Sequence record: OQ383623.1 | Reading direction: 5' to 3' (one strand) | Length of the DNA: 64,000 bases | Shown: piece after piece, positions 2,936-8,657 of the stretch | Layout of the letters: the number at the start of each line of letters is the position of its first letter | Position numbering within the stretch: position 1 is the first letter of the stretch | Translations under genes and position numbers: made by a program | Notes under the pieces: generated by a model | What the model saw: only the letters and a program-made list of their open reading frames with translations | Databases searched by the model: none | What the model was told of the DNA's origin: nothing

Positions 2936-3757
2936 TCAGCGAAGGGCGTCGGTAGTCTTACCGTGAGAGTTAACCACGTAGACTTCGTCGCCTTTATAAA
3001 ACAGTTCATACAGCGCACCGGTACTGATCTGGTTATCAGGATCGTATCCAGATTCTTCTTCGATGCACATTGCGCCAATCAGCTCATCGACTGATCGGTC
3101 GCCAGGGCGAGCGCCTTTTAAAACAGTAACAACACACTCACCGTTAACCCACTGCGACTGCTCCTGGACATCAGCGAACTCGATAGATGGGCCAGGCTCT
3201 AATTCGACTTGTTGCAGTTCTTCCTGAGTGTAGACAATAATCGCCATGTCGCTATCAGGAGATGGCTTGTACCAACCTAATTTTTCTAAGGGCGTACCAA
3301 AACCAACGAGTTCGCCGCGGATACTATCCATGGCTTCTGGTTCACATAAATTTGTCGCCAGTACCAAGATAGCATTCCCCTTATTATCTAGCACGTAGCT
3401 AATAAACTCGCGTGCGTTGCAGTTAAACACCTCGACCGTTTCCAAATCGGGGATAATAAGGTTGGGGAAAAGCTGCCGCAAATACGCGTGTGCATAAACC
3501 TGACTTTTATATAATCTGTGCGACCAGCTACAATAATCAGACAAAAGCATGGTGTTCGGATCAGGCACATCGGGGGCAACGCGTTTTAACCCCGGATTAA
3601 GGGCTAACTTTTCATCATCGACAACGATGTCGAAGCGCTCGTTCTCGAGCATTTTTAATGCCTCGCGGAATACACGAGACTTACGGTCACCGATACGAAC
3701 TTTTTCATGTTCGGTAATAATGCGGTCACCATCAATTACACGTTTAACTGTAAACAT
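2936..3757 (-). CDS. Hypothetical protein (start reassigned to ATG 3757, MFTVKRVIDG)
   Basis: AAGGAAAG SD precedes ATG 3757; the upstream extension in the ORF track (to 3865) is low-complexity and overlaps structured RNA. Confidence 0.7.
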   Translation of the reverse strand: MFTVKRVIDGDRIITEHEKVRIGDRKSRVFREALKMLENERFDIVVDDEKLALNPGLKRVAPDVPDPNTMLLSDYCSWSHRLYKSQVYAHAYLRQLFPNLIIPDLETVEVFNCNAREFISYVLDNKGNAILVLATNLCEPEAMDSIRGELVGFGTPLEKLGWYKPSPDSDMAIIVYTQEELQQVELEPGPSIEFADVQEQSQWVNGECVVTVLKGARPGDRSVDELIGAMCIEEESGYDPDNQISTGALYELFYKGDEVYVVNSHGKTTDALR

Positions 3758-3771
3758 GTTGCTTTCCTTCT

Positions 3772-4130
3772 TACTACTATTGCTGCTTCTATTGGTAGTC
3801 CACGACATATCCCTCGTGGGTGGGTTCGGCGTGTAACCGAATAAGTTTTTCTGTTCCCAGGGCAACGCACCAGGCTTAAGTGATTTAGTTGGCTAACTAG
3901 GAACAGAAAAGGGAGAACAAACCAGGGCGCGAGGTGGCTCTGGATGGATGCGTAAGAAAAACCCAAACGGCCCTGGCCTGTAAGTTGGCCCGAAGTCACC
4001 GTGTCGGAGGACAGCCCATGCAGGTAGGCGGCAATGGACACGGTGACCGCGGAAGTGGTTCGTGTTACCCTTGACCCGTGTGTGGATACGCGTCTTATTT
4101 CGAATGCCTTCGGGATAAGGATAACACAAA
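3772..4130. ncRNA. Candidate structured ncRNA A
   Basis: Consecutive closed domains: 11-bp 3847-3857/3900-3910, 7-bp 3922-3928/3970-3976, 11-bp 3995-4005/4037-4047, and 4062-4072/4117-4127. Confidence 0.55.
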
Positions 4131-4131
4131 T

Positions 4132-4207
4132 TGGCGACTCTGGCAGGATTTGAACCTGCGACATATGGATTAACAGTCCACCGTTCTACCAGCTGAACTA
4201 CAGAGTC
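4132..4207 (-). tRNA. trnN: tRNA-Asn(GTT)
   Basis: 76-nt cloverleaf GACTCTG...CAGAGTC-G-CCA, anticodon loop CTGTTAA, T loop TTCAAAT. Confidence 0.95.
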
Positions 4208-4217
4208 TTAAAGAGCG

Positions 4218-4289
4218 AGCATGTGACGGGATTCGAACCCGCGAAATATCCGATTATGAGTCGGGTGTTAATTCCTCTAACTTCACTGC
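4218..4289 (-). pseudogene. Degenerate tRNA-Met/Ile2(CAT)-like gene
   Basis: Anticodon loop CTCATAA and T arm GCGGG-TTCGAAT-CCCGT are intact; acceptor stem GCAGTG/CACATGC has a bulge, position 8 is A, no encoded CCA. Confidence 0.7.
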
Positions 4290-4292
4290 TCT

Positions 4293-4361
4293 TGCTTTGA
4301 CCGGACTCGAACCGGCGACCTTCCTCGAAGAGGCTGCTCTACCTACCTGAGCTACAAAGCC
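4293..4361 (-). ncRNA. tRNA-shaped RNA with a truncated anticodon arm
   Basis: GGCTTTG-TA-GCTC-AGGTAGGTA-GAGC-A-GCCTC-TTC-GAGGA-AGGTC-GCCGG-TTCGAGT-CCGGT-CAAAGCA: canonical D, variable and T arms, but a 13-nt anticodon arm instead of 17. Confidence 0.75.
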
Positions 4362-4369
4362 ATTGTTCA

Positions 4370-4760
4370 TGGCATCATGATAGTTACATTCAACGTACCA
4401 CACCCCTACTGGTTTCCGTTTCGGGGGACTTAACCAGACACCATACGTCCAAGGTCGACGCTTAGGTGTGTTATCAGTTGCCTGACTGGAAATCTCTTAC
4501 GAGACGTCTACGTTGAACCGGCAAGCCGGCCATGATGTGAAGATGGGGGAACGCCCAGGCTTCCGCCCAGTCGAGTGAGGTACGAATCCTTCACTCCTGT
4601 CATCACTGATGGTGACAGCGCTCCCATTGTAAGGTGCCGGTGCATCCCGGCGTGTGTTAGTGCATTCAGCTCCCTCGGGCTTATCTGCGGCAACACGTTG
4701 CCCGGCGCACCGACATATACCACAGTAACCTCGTAAAGTCACTCTGGTATTGTTCGTTGC
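4370..4760 (-). ncRNA. Candidate structured ncRNA B (about 390 nt)
   Basis: Nested stems 4373-4379/4531-4537 and 4389-4397/4509-4517; minus-strand GCAA, GTAA and CTTG tetraloops; own promoter at 4760-4787. Confidence 0.65.
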
Positions 4761-4787
4761 ATACTACTAAGTTATCACGTAAACGAT
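4760..4787 (-). promoter_or_regulatory. TAC-N15-TATG promoter driving ncRNA B and the tRNA cluster
   Basis: TTTAC-GTGATAACTTAGTAG-TATG, exact 15-nt spacer as in five other copies. Confidence 0.65.
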
Positions 4788-4794
4788 TTCACCA

Positions 4795-5400
4795 CTTCCA
4801 ATAATTAACCTAAATTCATTTCTGAATGCGGATGATGGACTTCTTCTTCTGAGCCCGGCCGTAAGGTCAGGTCTTAGCGTCTCCAAGCACCACCCGCTAT
4901 CACGTACATTCGTGGCGTACCGGCCGTATGAGGTACCGCGCCTACGGTGACACACAGTCACCCTAACACTGGGAACTCAATCCCATTCGGTTATCAGATT
5001 GTGGATTTACAGGCGTAGCGTGGCGGCTTAATGGGCCGGTGCTTGCCTGTCCCCTAGGGACGGTTGTCGTGGAGACGCCAGTCTGTAAGTGGGGCCCTTA
5101 CGGGAAAACCCATCGCCTGTAAACCAAACATGATTGAATACCCAGAACCGGACGTTGGAAATCAACATCCTGATGTACTGGAGTATTTCATGCATAAACG
5201 TGTCTCGTATCGAATGAGGTTATGACCGGTCAGATACCCAGCATCCTGTACAAGCGACCTGGTGCTTTGTGTACCTGGCTGCTACGGATTTATCGGCTTA
5301 CCGTAGGTCTAAGCTACTACCGGCTCATGCGGGACATCAACCCGCACAATCTGAGTAAGTATCACGGCTCGAATAGGGTTAGTGGGCCGAAGCCCACTGT
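4795..5400 (-). ncRNA. Candidate structured ncRNA C (core about 365 nt, 4991-5358)
   Basis: 10-bp closing helix 4994-5003/5345-5354 around multibranch domains (5006-5015/5114-5123; 5150-5157/5163-5170; 5222-5230/5319-5328); C(UUCG)G hairpin at 5381-5398. Confidence 0.65.
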
Positions 5401-5643
5401 TTAGCCAGCGTTGAACGATTCATGAACGACGGTCCCAGCAGGATAGTGCGTAGTACCGATAAGAGTAACGGTCAGGGTAAGCCCTTCATCCCAGCGCTCT
5501 TTCGGTAACCAGCGGCAGTCCATCCAATGACCACAGTCGGGAGGAATTGCACACGCAGCTTGCTCCGTAGGAGCCGCCACGATTATGGAATCAAATTCAT
5601 CATACCCGATATCGTCAGTTCGTTCTAGCAAGTACAAATTCAT
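5401..5643 (-). CDS. Small hypothetical phage protein
   Basis: GGAG SD before ATG 5643 (MNLYLLERTDDIGYDEFDSIIVAA). Confidence 0.7.
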   Translation of the reverse strand: MNLYLLERTDDIGYDEFDSIIVAAPTEQAACAIPPDCGHWMDCRWLPKERWDEGLTLTVTLIGTTHYPAGTVVHESFNAG

Positions 5644-5707
5644 GTTGTTCTCCAACAGTTGACAAATCTGTGTCTTCTGTGTTGAACCTGAATTCGTTGG
5701 CTAAATG

Positions 5708-5783
5708 TGGCGGGGGCACGAGGTTTCGAACCTCGAACCTTCGGTTTTGGAGACCGGTGCGCTACCAATTGCGCCATACCCCC
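5708..5783 (-). tRNA. trnW: tRNA-Trp(CCA)
   Basis: 76-nt cloverleaf GGGGGTA...TGCCCCC-G-CCA, anticodon loop CTCCAAA. Confidence 0.95.
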
Positions 5784-5876
5784 AGAATTCTTTAAACGTG
5801 TTTATACGGATGCGCTACCCCGTTATCGCAGGCGATTGATGGGGTCAAGCTTGCGTGCTTCTGACTCCCGCATGAT

Positions 5877-6368
5877 TCACCTCCGTAGTTCGTAAGTGCT
5901 AATCTCACCACCGGTGTAGATATCGCATTCGGACGCAATCTCAACAGCACGAACCGCATTCGCGCCCATCTTCATCGCACCCAACGCGTACTCGTAACCG
6001 CTTCCGGTTGCCAGAGGTGGTGTGGCTTCACTCCACCACAACGACACGTCGTCTTCACGCTTCCCACCGACTATCGCTTTCCCTGAGGCCAGAAGCATCA
6101 GGAAAGTAAAATCCATCTTCGCAGGTAACTGCGAGCTTTGTGTTAACCCCTTGTAGCCGGGTCTCAAGCGGACCGTTTCCAGCAGGGCCAATTGTCCTGT
6201 GATGTCGCCGCTTACCCCGAACACCACAATTCGTTCACCGGTAATCCACCACTCCTCGTCAGGAGGACAGACGAATAACTTCTGGGTATTCAGGTTGCAG
6301 ATATTCGACCCACGGGTTAACTGGCCGTCAGCAGCTAAGACTTTTCCATCGAACGCTATCGTGGTCAT
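5877..6368 (-). CDS. HslV/proteasome-beta-like Ntn-hydrolase peptidase
   Basis: N-terminal M-T-T-I-A...LAADGQ and GSGYEYALGAM...AVEIA...D.YTGG motifs. Confidence 0.75.
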   Translation of the reverse strand: MTTIAFDGKVLAADGQLTRGSNICNLNTQKLFVCPPDEEWWITGERIVVFGVSGDITGQLALLETVRLRPGYKGLTQSSQLPAKMDFTFLMLLASGKAIVGGKREDDVSLWWSEATPPLATGSGYEYALGAMKMGANAVRAVEIASECDIYTGGEISTYELRR

Positions 6369-6392
6369 GATTTAATTCTCCGTTTGGTTTAT

Positions 6393-6420
6393 CATACCTC
6401 ACGCAGAATCTGTAAATTTT
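6393..6420 (-). promoter_or_regulatory. TAC-N15-TATG promoter
   Basis: AAAATTTAC-AGATTCTGCGTGAGG-TATG upstream of the HslV-like gene. Confidence 0.65.
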
Positions 6421-7005
6421 AATCAGCCAGGTACCGTCGTTTCTCAACGGGAGTACCCACCCCTCTCGTCTGTTCCGAGCCGGCAAGATATGGACCAACC
6501 TCCTCATCGGAGTTATCCCCCAAGTCTGCGGTTCTACACGCAGACCCCTTTTCGACGCAACGCCGAATTCGAATCAGTTTTGGCCCGACGCCAGAGCGGA
6601 ATCAGCGATAACTATCGGAGGTAAGTTCAACGACGTCTCTCCGCTGCCCAGTCCTCTGGCGCTGCCACGGTCAACTCGGATTTTGTCATGGGTGCGCAGT
6701 CGACTTTCTCGACACTCTCGCAAACCGAACTACGCCCGACGTAGCACCGTCGGCAGGTCGGTTATCTACCGAGTACCTGAATGGGTGGTGATTGTCGGAA
6801 TCCCCGCCGACGCTCACCGGTTCTGTTCCACGGCGAAAGTTTTCCAGAACATAATAAATCACGCAGTGTTAGATTGCGCTTTGTCGAAGACACCACGGCA
6901 GGTATTTTCGAAAAAGCGTCCTGGGTAACAATCCCAGGACTTGGAGCCCTAGTGTGCAGGGTTTAAAAAGTGATTGGACCATTGGCGCGGTCAATCGCTA
7001 TTCGC
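6421..7005 (-). ncRNA. Candidate structured ncRNA D (about 585 nt)
   Basis: No credible ORF; more than 10 hairpins, including 6524-6530/6539-6545, 6589-6596/6654-6661 and 6918-6925/6933-6940; promoter at 7005-7032. Confidence 0.6.
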
Positions 7006-7032
7006 ATATAACAACAAACTCACGTAATCAAA
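7005..7032 (-). promoter_or_regulatory. TAC-N15-TATG promoter driving ncRNA D
   Basis: GATTAC-GTGAGTTTGTTGTTA-TATG, exact 15-nt spacer. Confidence 0.6.
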
Positions 7033-7035
7033 AAA

Positions 7036-7240
7036 TTACCGGCTCGAGGCGTAGGCGTCCAGGAGCCGGTGAGTCACACAGCAGTGAGTCCCTCTGCGGG
7101 GATTTTCGTGGAGCTTGTCGTTGAAATAAAAATCCGTCCCTGGACGGGTTGGTGATGTGGGTCGACTTGTCAGAGTCTGCCGTCCAGGGAGGCGGCCACC
7201 GAAGCTATGGGTTTTGGACATCGAGTGGTGGTCTGAACAC
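7036..7240 (-). ncRNA. Candidate structured ncRNA E (about 200 nt)
   Basis: Stems 7038-7045/7063-7070, 7100-7106/7129-7135 and 11-bp 7137-7147/7180-7190; near-consensus promoter TTTTTTAC-N15-TGTG at 7238-7265. Confidence 0.5.
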
Positions 7241-7294
7241 ACGATAGGGAAACCACGTAAAAAATACACAGGGTACCCAAACTAGGACTTCCGT

Positions 7295-7540
7295 CCGATC
7301 ACGATCTCTTAATAAGGATCACGCGCGCGCCTGCACGCGTTTTAAGATCTTAATATAATATATATTATTATATATTAATATATTTATTTATATAAATAAT
7401 TATAATAATTAAATATAATACCTAAAGGTATTATTATATTTAATATTATTATATATTTTAAAAGATCCTGGAGGATACGGGTGTGCGCACGCGCACGCGT
7501 ATAAGGAAAGGGTCTTCGACCCGATCCACAGGATCAATCT
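7295..7540. other. Origin-like element: AT tract, GATC cluster and alternating purine/pyrimidine flanks
   Basis: 7350-7463 has only 4 G/C in 114 bp; 7 GATC sites in 7297-7535; alternating R/Y runs at 7321-7330 and 7481-7503. Confidence 0.5.
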
Positions 7541-8090
7541 AAAAAACAATCTAAGTGATTGTTTTAAAAAGAAATTTTGAGAATTAGATTAAATTATCCC
7601 CTAAGGGGGATTTTAGAGCGAGTTAAACAACCCAAAAGAACTCGTAAGTAACCGACAGTGTGTGTCGGTTACAGAACGATCCAGTTTTCACCCAGACATG
7701 GCACGAAGTGCTACCCAACGTGTGATCGTCGCGGCGACCGGCGACCGTCGTCCCGGAACCGAAACGGGAATGGCTCTCTCGCGCTCTCAGCGGCCCGCTG
7801 GCGCGATTTTCCGGTAGGGGGAACCCAAGTGTACTGGGTTGGGTATAAATCTCGTTCTAGCGCTTTCTAGAGCGTTTTTAATAACTGGTTAAAAAACATA
7901 CAATCCAGAATCCCCATTCCCCGTATTTCCTCGCCCCGACAAAAATAAATTCACCGACTCGATGCAAGACCCCCTCTAAAATGCACGTAACCTGCCCTAG
8001 AAAACGATAAACTATCAAAAATGAGCTACCCTACACCCAGACCACTTAATCGTTTTCTGGTGTTTCCTAGACATCTTTAATCGGATGGTT

Positions 8091-8140
8091 AAAAAAACAA
8101 AAAAAAATAAGATTGGCGTACTCCCCGAAGAGAGTACGCC
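8091..8140 (-). terminator. Intrinsic terminator
   Basis: GGCGTACTC/GAGTACGCC stem with TTCG in the loop and a long T-run. Confidence 0.8.
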
Positions 8141-8147
8141 TAGTGAC

Positions 8148-8657
8148 TTAACACTTGATGGTATAGCCATCAAGGCCAAGGTGTACTGGTTTTATCCATA
8201 ACCCTGGCTCCCCGAAAATATTCAGGTCGTAAGTTTGGTAATGCATGATCTTTGCAGGAACATGCACACCCATGCGTTGCAGAAATTCCCAGACGGCGAC
8301 GTAGCGTTCACGAGTGATGAACATTAATCCGGAGTCGAACCCGGAACCGATGTCTAAGAAATTACCAAGAGAACTGTCAAAACTTGACACGCCGTCTTGA
8401 GTAAGTGCGACCAACCCTTTAGTTAAATCTCTGTGGTTGTCAATGAAGTTACAGAGATCTACGATGGTTATTTGACCGTAAATACGACGGAGGACGGCAG
8501 CAACAGCCAAAATCTCGCTGGTATTTCCGTAGTCACCTAAAGGGTTATGGTCCATCATCGCAGTAATTATGCTTGTGTCGCAGAGGTCGATTAACCGCTG
8601 GTCATGTACCACCAGGTTAAGACCTTGCCCCACCCGCATGGTTGGCGCAGTAAACAT
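8148..8657 (-). CDS. Hypothetical protein (likely start ATG 8657, MFTAPT)
   Basis: AAGGAG SD directly after the stop of the upstream gene. Confidence 0.65.
   Translation of the reverse strand: MFTAPTMRVGQGLNLVVHDQRLIDLCDTSIITAMMDHNPLGDYGNTSEILAVAAVLRRIYGQITIVDLCNFIDNHRDLTKGLVALTQDGVSSFDSSLGNFLDIGSGFDSGLMFITRERYVAVWEFLQRMGVHVPAKIMHYQTYDLNIFGEPGLWIKPVHLGLDGYTIKC

Follow-up and report, generated by a model that had tools for sequence, protein, structure and literature searches.

A candidate modular structured RNA with an embedded reading frame in the tRNA clusters of SPN3US-like and Erwinia jumbo phages

Background

ROOL and GOLLD are phage-encoded RNAs of 500–800 nt, often located beside tRNA islands and featuring many covarying helices and pseudoknots; in GOLLD, one half is conserved and the other is variable (bioRxiv 10.1101/2024.12.08.627333). 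Here an RNA element is described, which is predicted on the minus strand of a 64,000-nucleotide stretch of sequence record OQ383623.1; this whole stretch is referred to as the window. The record is Salmonella phage MET_P1_082_240, a 243-kb Seoulvirus belonging to the SPN3US-like jumbo phages, and the 4.4 kb around the element are 100% identical to it. The element shares with ROOL and GOLLD the phage origin, the size (about 525–590 nt) and the position inside tRNA clusters, but it is not matched by their Rfam models even at E <= 10, and it is found in jumbo phages of Enterobacterales, with a conserved open reading frame (ORF) bearing a coding signature.

Other described systems offer more limited likenesses. 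Transfer-messenger RNA (tmRNA, SsrA), a structured RNA of similar size, connected to tRNA biology and encoded also by some large phages, contains an internal frame which enters a helix and terminates within a hairpin loop. The internal frame of the element likewise runs into structure and stops in a hairpin loop; the element, however, has neither a tRNA-like domain nor paired 5' and 3' ends, and its ORF, 55–69 codons long, has an AUG and a Shine-Dalgarno (SD)-like motif of its own. The tRNA cluster of phage T4 gives rise to stable non-tRNA RNAs (species 1 and 2, RNA C and D), co-transcribed with the tRNAs and released by tRNA-processing enzymes; they are about 120–140 nt long, contain no ORF and are not known to be related to the element in sequence. 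They would resemble it in being non-tRNA RNAs of a phage tRNA cluster. Dual-function RNAs, such as S. aureus RNAIII with hld and E. coli SgrS with sgrT, are structured regulatory RNAs also encoding a small peptide; they are bacterial, show no homology to the element, and their main closing helix does not have the ORF as one of its strands. Finally, the 5' module of the element is reminiscent of SAM-II/preQ1-type leaders, as a loop of its conserved junction fold pairs with a segment next to the ribosome-binding site; yet it matches no known aptamer family, and no ORF directly follows it in a second group of phages, similar to SA002. By size, ornateness and tRNA-island position, ROOL and GOLLD appear to be the nearest analogues; judged by these comparisons, the element is a member of none of the families considered.

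Results

Extent and strand of the element

The region had been pointed out by an earlier note, made from the letters alone, as a non-coding RNA of about 365 nt, closed by a 10-bp terminal helix and similar to RNase P or tmRNA in size and architecture. The sequences quoted there were all found where the note had placed them, and covarying helices and a pseudoknot, present in relatives, confirm that a large multidomain structured RNA is located here. The minus strand, the ORF, the pseudoknot, the modular nature of the 5' domain and the setting in a tRNA cluster escaped the note. The features described below are listed, with their coordinates, in Table 1; loci other than the window are indicated, when necessary, by our own handles (L followed by a number).

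When analyzed by blastn, the region is matched in 66 phage records: identities are 96–99% within the SPN3US clade, 77–81% in SPAsTU and pEa_SNUABM_29, and about 70%, over part of the region, in Machinavirus, Erskinevirus and Wellingtonvirus, which include phages of Erwinia and Salmonella. Further copies were obtained by pattern scans of IMG/VR and JGI metagenomes, from contigs encoding the embedded ORF and from Logan assemblies, leading to 20 distinct homologues in all, with pairwise identities of 50–99%. In these 20 phage genomes or contigs the element lies within tRNA clusters, and its conservation spans four genera (Seoulvirus, Machinavirus, Erskinevirus, Wellingtonvirus). Three candidates, from a metagenome (L026), IMG/VR (L044) and an Ignavibacteriales metagenome-assembled genome (L046), were discarded as chance pattern matches after sequence inspection or covariance model search. 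A pattern scan for the 5' module, covering one genome per species for 185,579 bacterial and archaeal species, found no true copy, and blastn and nhmmer found no second copy of the element in the window. Many of the pairing and alignment counts reported below refer to an alignment of 16 sequences; the covariance model of the 5' module is based on 22 sequences and the analysis of the P3 duplex on 19.

A profile hidden Markov model of the 16-sequence alignment matches the window once, on its minus strand (5351-4824), and covariance models match at 5193-5355 and 4822-4908. From about 5348 to about 4824 conservation is a mosaic, where invariant stretches are interspersed with variable hairpins. The minus strand is indicated by the covarying helices, since G-U cells outnumber A-C cells 48 to 7; pairing is 94.4% when they are read as minus and 87.2% when read as plus. 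The folding energy of the single sequence, compared to shuffles, gives z scores of -2.1 for the plus and -3.3 for the minus strand, a modest gain.

The terminal helix of the earlier note, formed by TCAGATTGTG (4994-5003) and CACAATCTGA (5345-5354), exists as a perfect 10-nt inverted repeat. Such a repeat is unremarkable alone, because about 0.17 perfect 10-mers are expected by chance per 640 nt, by our own estimate; three perfect inverted repeats of at least 9 nt occur here. Given the weak single-sequence signal and the unremarkable 10-mer, relatives were needed to settle the structure. Conservation or covariation in relatives had been set beforehand as the point on which the terminal helix would stand or fall: in 16 relatives it is paired in 52% of cases, with no compensation. 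The 3' arm, ACAAUCUGA, does not vary, whereas the 5' arm, overlapped by the P1 hairpin, is free to change even in SPAsTU and pEa29, which are 77–79% identical; the covarying P1 stem takes up four bases of the helix. Nor is the unit 365 nt long: the conserved element measures about 525 nt and continues for about 170 nt past the helix in the 3' direction.

The 5' module

The 5' module, of about 150 nt (approximately 5204-5348), is composed of the P1 hairpin, the PK1 pseudoknot and a three- or four-way junction. The four core pairs of PK1 are canonical in 15–16 of the 16 sequences, with AU:8/GC:7 at one position and AU:13/GC:3 at another. All four combinations of the two covarying positions are found (GAUG/CAUU, GAUA/UAUU, GGUA/UACU, GGUG/CACU), which is strong evidence for the pseudoknot. 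The partner of the P1 loop is a tetramer, located 12–25 nt upstream of the ORF start.

The junction is closed by P2. The earlier note had described a helix, ATGACCGGT/ACCGGCTCAT, enclosing two more hairpins: only its core, nnCGG/CCGnn, is borne out, covarying at three positions in P2 and enclosing two covarying hairpins. The helices of P2b and P2c are paired in 92–100% of cases. Single-sequence folds of all homologues concur with this arrangement, predicting a P1 with a 7-nt loop and a P2-closed junction, containing an optional hairpin, P2b and P2c. After realignment of the module to its covariance model, 94.4% of cells are paired, compared to 73% in shuffles and 34–44% with slid partners; both partners have changed in 20 of the 26 pairs. 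The module scores 0.645 for covariation, compared to 0.226 for shuffles, none of which (0 out of 500) comes up to the observed value.

A complete 5' module, including P1, pseudoknot and P2, is also present in the SA002-like phages (about 275–290 kb; L012, L041, L042). PK1 covaries also in this group, and P2, in the form CAGCGAU/AUCGCUG, adds further covariation. These loci do not contain the ORF, the central domain or the 3' domain. The module starts about 27 nt after the end of tRNA-Tyr (in SA002 and L042) and 100–200 nt before a homologue of the phrog_5444 ORF, which in the window lies just upstream of the element. As judged by this comparison, the 5' module is modular, and occurs alone in SA002-like phages. 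With respect to riboswitches and leaders, where a covarying fold is located upstream of a gene, at its start region, the module is adjacent to the ribosome-binding site in the SPN3US group and 100–200 nt from the next gene in SA002-like phages; since no ORF accompanies it in the latter, the module cannot be solely a translational switch for that ORF. A different structured stretch, of 100–200 nt, is found in SA002-like loci between the module and the phrog_5444 homologue.

The embedded ORF and the central domain

The ORF is found in the same place, with an open frame, in all 20 homologues, and in all of them it starts with an AUG preceded by an SD-like motif, ranging from weak to good. It matches phrog_26199 with E values of 1.1e-4 for the window, 1e-49 for Machina and 0.011 for Asesino, and several Erwinia phages have it annotated as a hypothetical protein. 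The protein has no Pfam or NCBIfam match; tblastn finds it in the same phages only, and its family amounts to only 7 clusters in a search of 5.8 billion proteins. A local hairpin at the SD motif (CUCAU..AUGAG) was also considered, and rejected because of its weak and inconsistent conservation.

In every homologue the ORF ends with the same UAA, located in the loop of a conserved hairpin, and the distance between a conserved W-F/L-T/S-G and the stop varies in whole codons only. In L038 the C-terminus of the peptide is altered, yet both the hairpin, through compensatory changes (AGC..GCU to UGC..GCA), and the stop codon in its loop are retained.

The two halves of the ORF behave differently, as indicated by the proportions of non-synonymous (pN) and synonymous (pS) changes. 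For the N-terminal half pN/pS is 0.38 and pS 0.40, with 126/70/163 changes at the three codon positions (28/15/39 when phylogenetically independent pairs are counted); for the C-terminal half pN/pS is 0.84, pS is suppressed to 0.145 and position counts are flat. By these measures the first half evolves as protein-coding sequence, while the second is constrained as RNA and not as peptide. A long irregular helix, proposed in the earlier note at 5129-5202, falls in the fast-evolving, protein-coding first half and shows no conserved pairing.

The 5' strand of the P3 duplex is provided, throughout the family, by the best-conserved codons of the ORF, R-x-W-x-L-x-x-Y-W-F/L-T/S-G; the 3' strand, with consensus ACAAUCUGA..AUGGGAUURAGUUCCCAG, lies downstream of the stop codon. 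The helix, of about 25 bp, closes a central domain which encloses the second half of the ORF together with its stop codon. A duplex of 21–27 bp is formed in 19 out of 19 sequences tested, at -16 to -31 kcal/mol, versus -9 to -12 for shuffles (mean z -4.6). In its variable stretch, the non-coding strand tracks both synonymous and non-synonymous codon changes. Among the hairpins enclosed by P3, B and C covary (for example AGAC/GUCU to GGAC/GUCC and GUCC/GGAC to GUCU/AGAC). The pairing of TTTACAGGCG with CGCCTGTAAA, part of another domain of the earlier note, is perfect and unchanged in 9 of 16 relatives (Seoulvirus and Machinavirus), while other pairings replace it in Erskinevirus and Wellingtonvirus.

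The cassette and the 3' domain

In the region downstream of P3, from P4 to P6, 14 of the 32 pairs show compensatory changes. P5 is a variable cassette, existing in three or four unrelated versions, whose distribution cuts across phage phylogeny: Asesino and EaH2 are 88% identical and carry different cassettes, while the window and Asesino are 55% identical and carry nearly the same one. The type 1 cassette is present once in the window, and in IMG/VR was found only inside this element. Being shared across genera and differing within them, the P4/P5 cassette (4912-4962) suggests either recombinational exchange or a maintained polymorphism.

A conserved linker, GUAAUGUGAAAG, separates the cassette from the 3' domain, P6, whose closing helix, of 10–13 bp, covaries. 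The hairpins noticed earlier at 4813-4984 are part of a conserved 3' domain. A covariance model for this domain (R2) scores 72–105 bits in most members, and 83.6 bits in the window. In Erwinia phage Wellington (L011, 1349-1433) and in L021 the 10-bp closing helix is retained with a rewritten interior, scoring 40 bits, while 85%-identical phages keep the consensus. A 9-nt complementarity between 4877-4885 and 5070-5078 is present in the window; it is not conserved, and was not retained.

Comparison with known RNA families

Rfam 15 was searched at the gathering score on the window, at E <= 10 on window positions 3700-8200 and at E <= 5 on six homologous loci. At these thresholds only tRNAs and tRNA look-alike noise were found, with no RNase P, tmRNA, 6S, ROOL, GOLLD, intron or known riboswitch; the absence of RNase P, tmRNA and 6S signatures, stated in the earlier note, is in agreement with this relaxed search. 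In particular, the RNase P covariance models, which include the P4 helix and CR-I to CR-V, have no match in 3700-8200 or in the six loci, and neither does the 6S model, with its long helix and central bubble, match the regions searched. No tmRNA is called by ARAGORN. The tRNA-like domain formed by paired 5' and 3' ends, a hallmark of tmRNA, is missing, the sole candidate end-to-end helix being the one that is not conserved; also missing is a tag frame devoid of its own start codon, the ORF having an AUG and an SD-like motif. Group I or II introns have no Rfam match, and the element is flanked by the stop codon of an ORF and by intergenic DNA or intact tRNAs. No tRNA or tRNA pseudogene lies inside the element, as tRNA matches are all outside 4824-5348. 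No description of this RNA was found in the literature searched.

A number of short resemblances (RNase P CR-II, a T-box sequence, the 23S GTPase-centre hairpin, the 16S 530 and 790 loops, the 11-nt receptor, the K-turn) amount to 6–10-nt similarities, lack a structural match or Rfam support and were not counted as evidence.

Genomic localization and neighbouring genes

Along the direction of minus-strand transcription, the gene order is: an HslV-like ORF, tRNA-Trp, the phrog_5444 ORF, the RNA element, about 440 nt of poorly conserved DNA, two weak tRNA-like matches and tRNA-Asn. The tRNAs and ORFs flanking the element all share this strand. Between these genes a scan of the minus strand gave no sigma-70 promoter or intrinsic terminator, a result of no weight in a phage that has RNA polymerases of its own. 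The next tRNA of Asesino, EaH2 and L016 starts no more than about 4 nt from the terminal helix of the element. Records of Seoulvirus phages report, at the position of the element, either nothing or spurious ORFs on the wrong strand.

Relatives sharing the layout of the cluster contain more tRNAs (7 in SPAsTU, 13 in Asesino) than the two clear ones of the window, and the array of the SPN3US clade looks decayed from this comparison. The weak matches, at 4218-4289 and 4292-4361 (minus), score 31.9 and 39.9 bits with the tRNA model; one has a truncated anticodon loop, and ARAGORN calls neither. At 4541-4625 (minus) a cloverleaf-like RNA of about 85 nt is predicted, with a closing stem and three hairpins (minimum free energy -37.1, z -2.0). 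An 88% identical stretch is found in Asesino, between tRNA-Ile and tRNA-His, while the large element is only about 55% identical in these two phages; the cloverleaf-like RNA is not called as a tRNA by ARAGORN or Rfam, and a tRNA-Asp is annotated there in Proteus phage 7.

The phrog_5444 protein (MNLYLLER..YDEFDS..VVAAP..FNAG) is always encoded in the tRNA region, adjoining the 5' module, on opposite sides of it in the two phage groups. It has no sequence match in Pfam, NCBIfam or PDB; its AlphaFold2 model, featuring four strands and a helix with a predicted local distance difference test score of 78, has no fold match in PDB at E < 1. Between the stop codon of this ORF and the element lies a C(UUCG)G hairpin, which the earlier note had considered as a possible 5' stabiliser. 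The hairpin exists and no U-tract follows it, as described; it is restricted to Seoulvirus relatives, lies outside the conserved element and is not called by the terminator scan.

Three further observations concern the surroundings. Just upstream, in the sense of transcription, of the HslV-like gene, 1.8 kb (6369-8148) contain no ORF of at least 100 aa; Rfam gives noise only at E <= 10, and conservation in relatives is partial, with insertions and deletions. A YTATATATG motif recurs 40–60 nt after the element in L005, L007, L009, L037, L038 and L040, and is absent from the window; in some phages it overlaps the AUG of the ORF (at the ORF start in ChrisDB-like ones), and it might be a promoter for a phage polymerase. 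Finally, several of the SPFM records (LR535901-LR535921) match the region only as 7–40 short pieces, at 97–99% identity, which points to many small assembly indels and not to biology.

Table 1. Coordinates of the RNA element, its parts and the neighbouring features (window positions, unless a locus is named)
Feature	Position	Strand	Remarks
Whole conserved RNA element	4824-5348	minus	about 525 nt; RNA 5' end near 5348, 3' end near 4824
P1 hairpin	5326-5348	minus	UGUGCGGG / loop UUGAUGU / CCCGCAUG; 4 of 7 pairs changed on both sides
PK1, 3' strand	5211-5216	minus	CAUU(CG), pairs with P1 loop 5334-5340
P2 junction domain	5225-5324	minus	closing helix GCCGGU 5319-5324 with ACCGGU 5225-5230
P2b	5282-5306	minus	conserved 13-nt loop; 6 of 7 pairs changed on both sides
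P2c	5231-5278	minus	ACAAAGCA internal loop; its two helices each have 5 of 6 pairs changed on both sides
Embedded ORF	5028-5195	minus	55 aa, phrog_26199; stop UAA at 5028-5030
P3, 5' strand	5117-5145	minus	within ORF codons for RFWVFNHVWFT; pairs with 4969-4997
P3, 3' strand	4969-4997	minus	CUGAUAACCGAAUGGGAUUGAGUUCCCAG
Central-domain interior	5006-5123	minus	helix UUUACAGGCG/CGCCUGUAAA; hairpins 5091-5111, 5073-5084, 5049-5061; stop-codon hairpin 5017-5043
P4 hairpin	4946-4962	minus	GGUGAC-UGUGU-GUCACC; 4 of 6 pairs with compensatory changes
P5 variable cassette	4912-4945	minus	type 1 in the window
P6, 3' domain	4824-4903	minus	closing helix GCGGGUGGUG 4888-4897 with CAUCAUCCGC 4828-4837, extended by about 3 bp; conserved interior and terminal hairpin
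5' module in SA002-like phages	L012 1445-1594; L041 2024-2173; L042 1107-1264
HslV-like ORF	5877-6368	minus	first in cluster
tRNA-Trp	5708-5783	minus	Rfam and ARAGORN; context
84-aa ORF, phrog_5444	5401-5655	minus	PHROG match E = 1.4e-36; syntenic neighbour of the 5' module
Hairpin GUGGGC-UUCG-GCCCAC	5381-5398	minus	between the stop codon of the upstream ORF and the element, outside the conserved element
tRNA-Asn	4132-4207	minus	Rfam and ARAGORN; downstream end of cluster

Discussion

The existence of the element, its strand, extent and main helices are well supported by the comparison of homologues. The reading preferred here, held with slightly better than even confidence when taken together with its mechanism, is that of a modular structured RNA, so far uncatalogued, which SPN3US-like and Erwinia jumbo phages encode on the minus strand as part of a tRNA operon. 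It probably represents a new phage RNA family, processed together with tRNAs. As a tRNA lies close to the terminal helix in some relatives and just before P1 in SA002 and L042, and no sigma-70 promoter or intrinsic terminator was found between the minus-strand genes, the most economical reading would be co-transcription with the tRNAs, followed by release by RNase P and other tRNA-processing nucleases. These enzymes would cut the RNA out of the tRNA precursor, and its 3' end would, in some relatives, be generated when RNase P cleaves the next tRNA. The small ORF is probably translated. The 5' module would bind a partner and, through the pseudoknot, set the access to the ORF start region; a translating ribosome would have to melt the central helix, and the molecule would then alternate between a compact fold and an mRNA form. 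We infer, with modest confidence, that the 5' module gates translation and that translation opens the central fold. An action on translation or tRNA metabolism during infection seems most likely, in view of the tRNA context. A more elaborate proposal is tentative, and as a whole rather doubtful: a new class of bifunctional phage RNA, ornate and derived from the tRNA operon, where translation of its own ORF would open and close the fold, a sensor module shared with other jumbo phages would gate translation and the exchangeable cassette would set partner specificity, for example between co-infecting phages or toward a host translation or defence factor.

Several points weigh against the preferred reading. 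The layout of the central-domain interior differs between clades, being distinct in Erskinevirus and Wellingtonvirus. The homologues, about 20, come from related phages, and covariation counts are not phylogenetically independent. SA002-like phages carry the 5' module with no ORF following it, and the SD-like motif of the Seoulvirus clade is a weak one. Protein-level evolution is neutral in the second half of the ORF, so that any functional peptide may be only about 30 residues long, and something other than its product could be the reason why the frame stays open. What is said of promoter, 5' end, stability and translation is predicted from the sequence.

An alternative is an RNA, ornate and purely non-coding, which would arise from the tRNA operon and be functionally analogous to ROOL or GOLLD, for example as a stable scaffold or as a cage-forming molecule, the ORF being untranslated or its product irrelevant. 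RNA constraint does dominate, since the domains corresponding to untranslated regions (UTRs) are far better conserved than the peptide and pN/pS is 0.84 in the C-terminal half of the ORF; the 5' module lives without the ORF in SA002-like phages, size and tRNA-island setting fit the published accounts of ROOL and GOLLD, and a palindrome in the loop of the type 1 cassette, CGGCCG, could support loop-loop contacts. It is nevertheless unlikely in our opinion: the N-terminal half bears a coding signature (pN/pS 0.38, 126/70/163), AUG and SD-like motif are present in 20 out of 20 homologues, indels before the conserved stop are all of whole codons, and neither ROOL nor GOLLD is matched in Rfam. The opposite reduction, to an ordinary small-protein gene of phrog_26199, whose 5' and 3' UTRs, long and structured, would have no role beyond mRNA stability or processing in the tRNA transcript, is given little credence. 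The ORF is indeed conserved and annotated in several Erwinia phages, and structured flanks are common around genes embedded in tRNA operons; but here constraint is stronger on the flanks and on the ORF's second half than on the protein, covariation in many helices together with a pseudoknot exceeds the needs of a stabiliser hairpin, the 5' module is conserved in a second phage group lacking the gene, and the protein family is limited to 7 clusters among 5.8 billion proteins.

Two other explanations deny the element its present limits or its function. That of an RNase P-like or tmRNA-like RNA of about 365 nt, possibly catalytic and closed by the 4994-5003/5345-5354 helix, draws on the perfect 10-bp complement in the window and on a folding somewhat better than that of shuffles. 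With the helix 52% paired, uncompensated and in competition with the covarying P1, with a conserved unit running about 170 nt past it on the 3' side, and with no RNase P, tmRNA or 6S match (at E <= 10 in the window, E <= 5 in six homologous loci) nor an ARAGORN tmRNA call, this explanation is hardly credible. Decayed tRNA genes, or an intron, left without function in the shrunken array of the SPN3US clade, would fit the two clear tRNAs of the window, compared to 7–13 in relatives, and the tRNA-like remnants at 4218-4361. The chance of this is next to nil, as the element is present and covarying in relatives with full tRNA arrays, is conserved across four genera and includes, at the Rfam thresholds given above, no match to tRNA or intron models.

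For the preferred reading, a structured RNA of the tRNA operon with a probably translated ORF, a number of oddities lend themselves to testing: an ORF constrained half as protein and half as RNA, a stop codon fixed in a loop, a pseudoknot near the start, a reused 5' module and a shuffled cassette. The annotation of Seoulvirus records, which miss the element, is corrected. Large structured RNAs of this sort are rare; ROOL and GOLLD, phage RNAs located beside tRNA islands, form RNA-only cages. The element would be a third example, unrelated to them, and its phages, SPN3US and the Erwinia jumbo phages, can be grown on laboratory hosts, with genetic tools available for the phages already.

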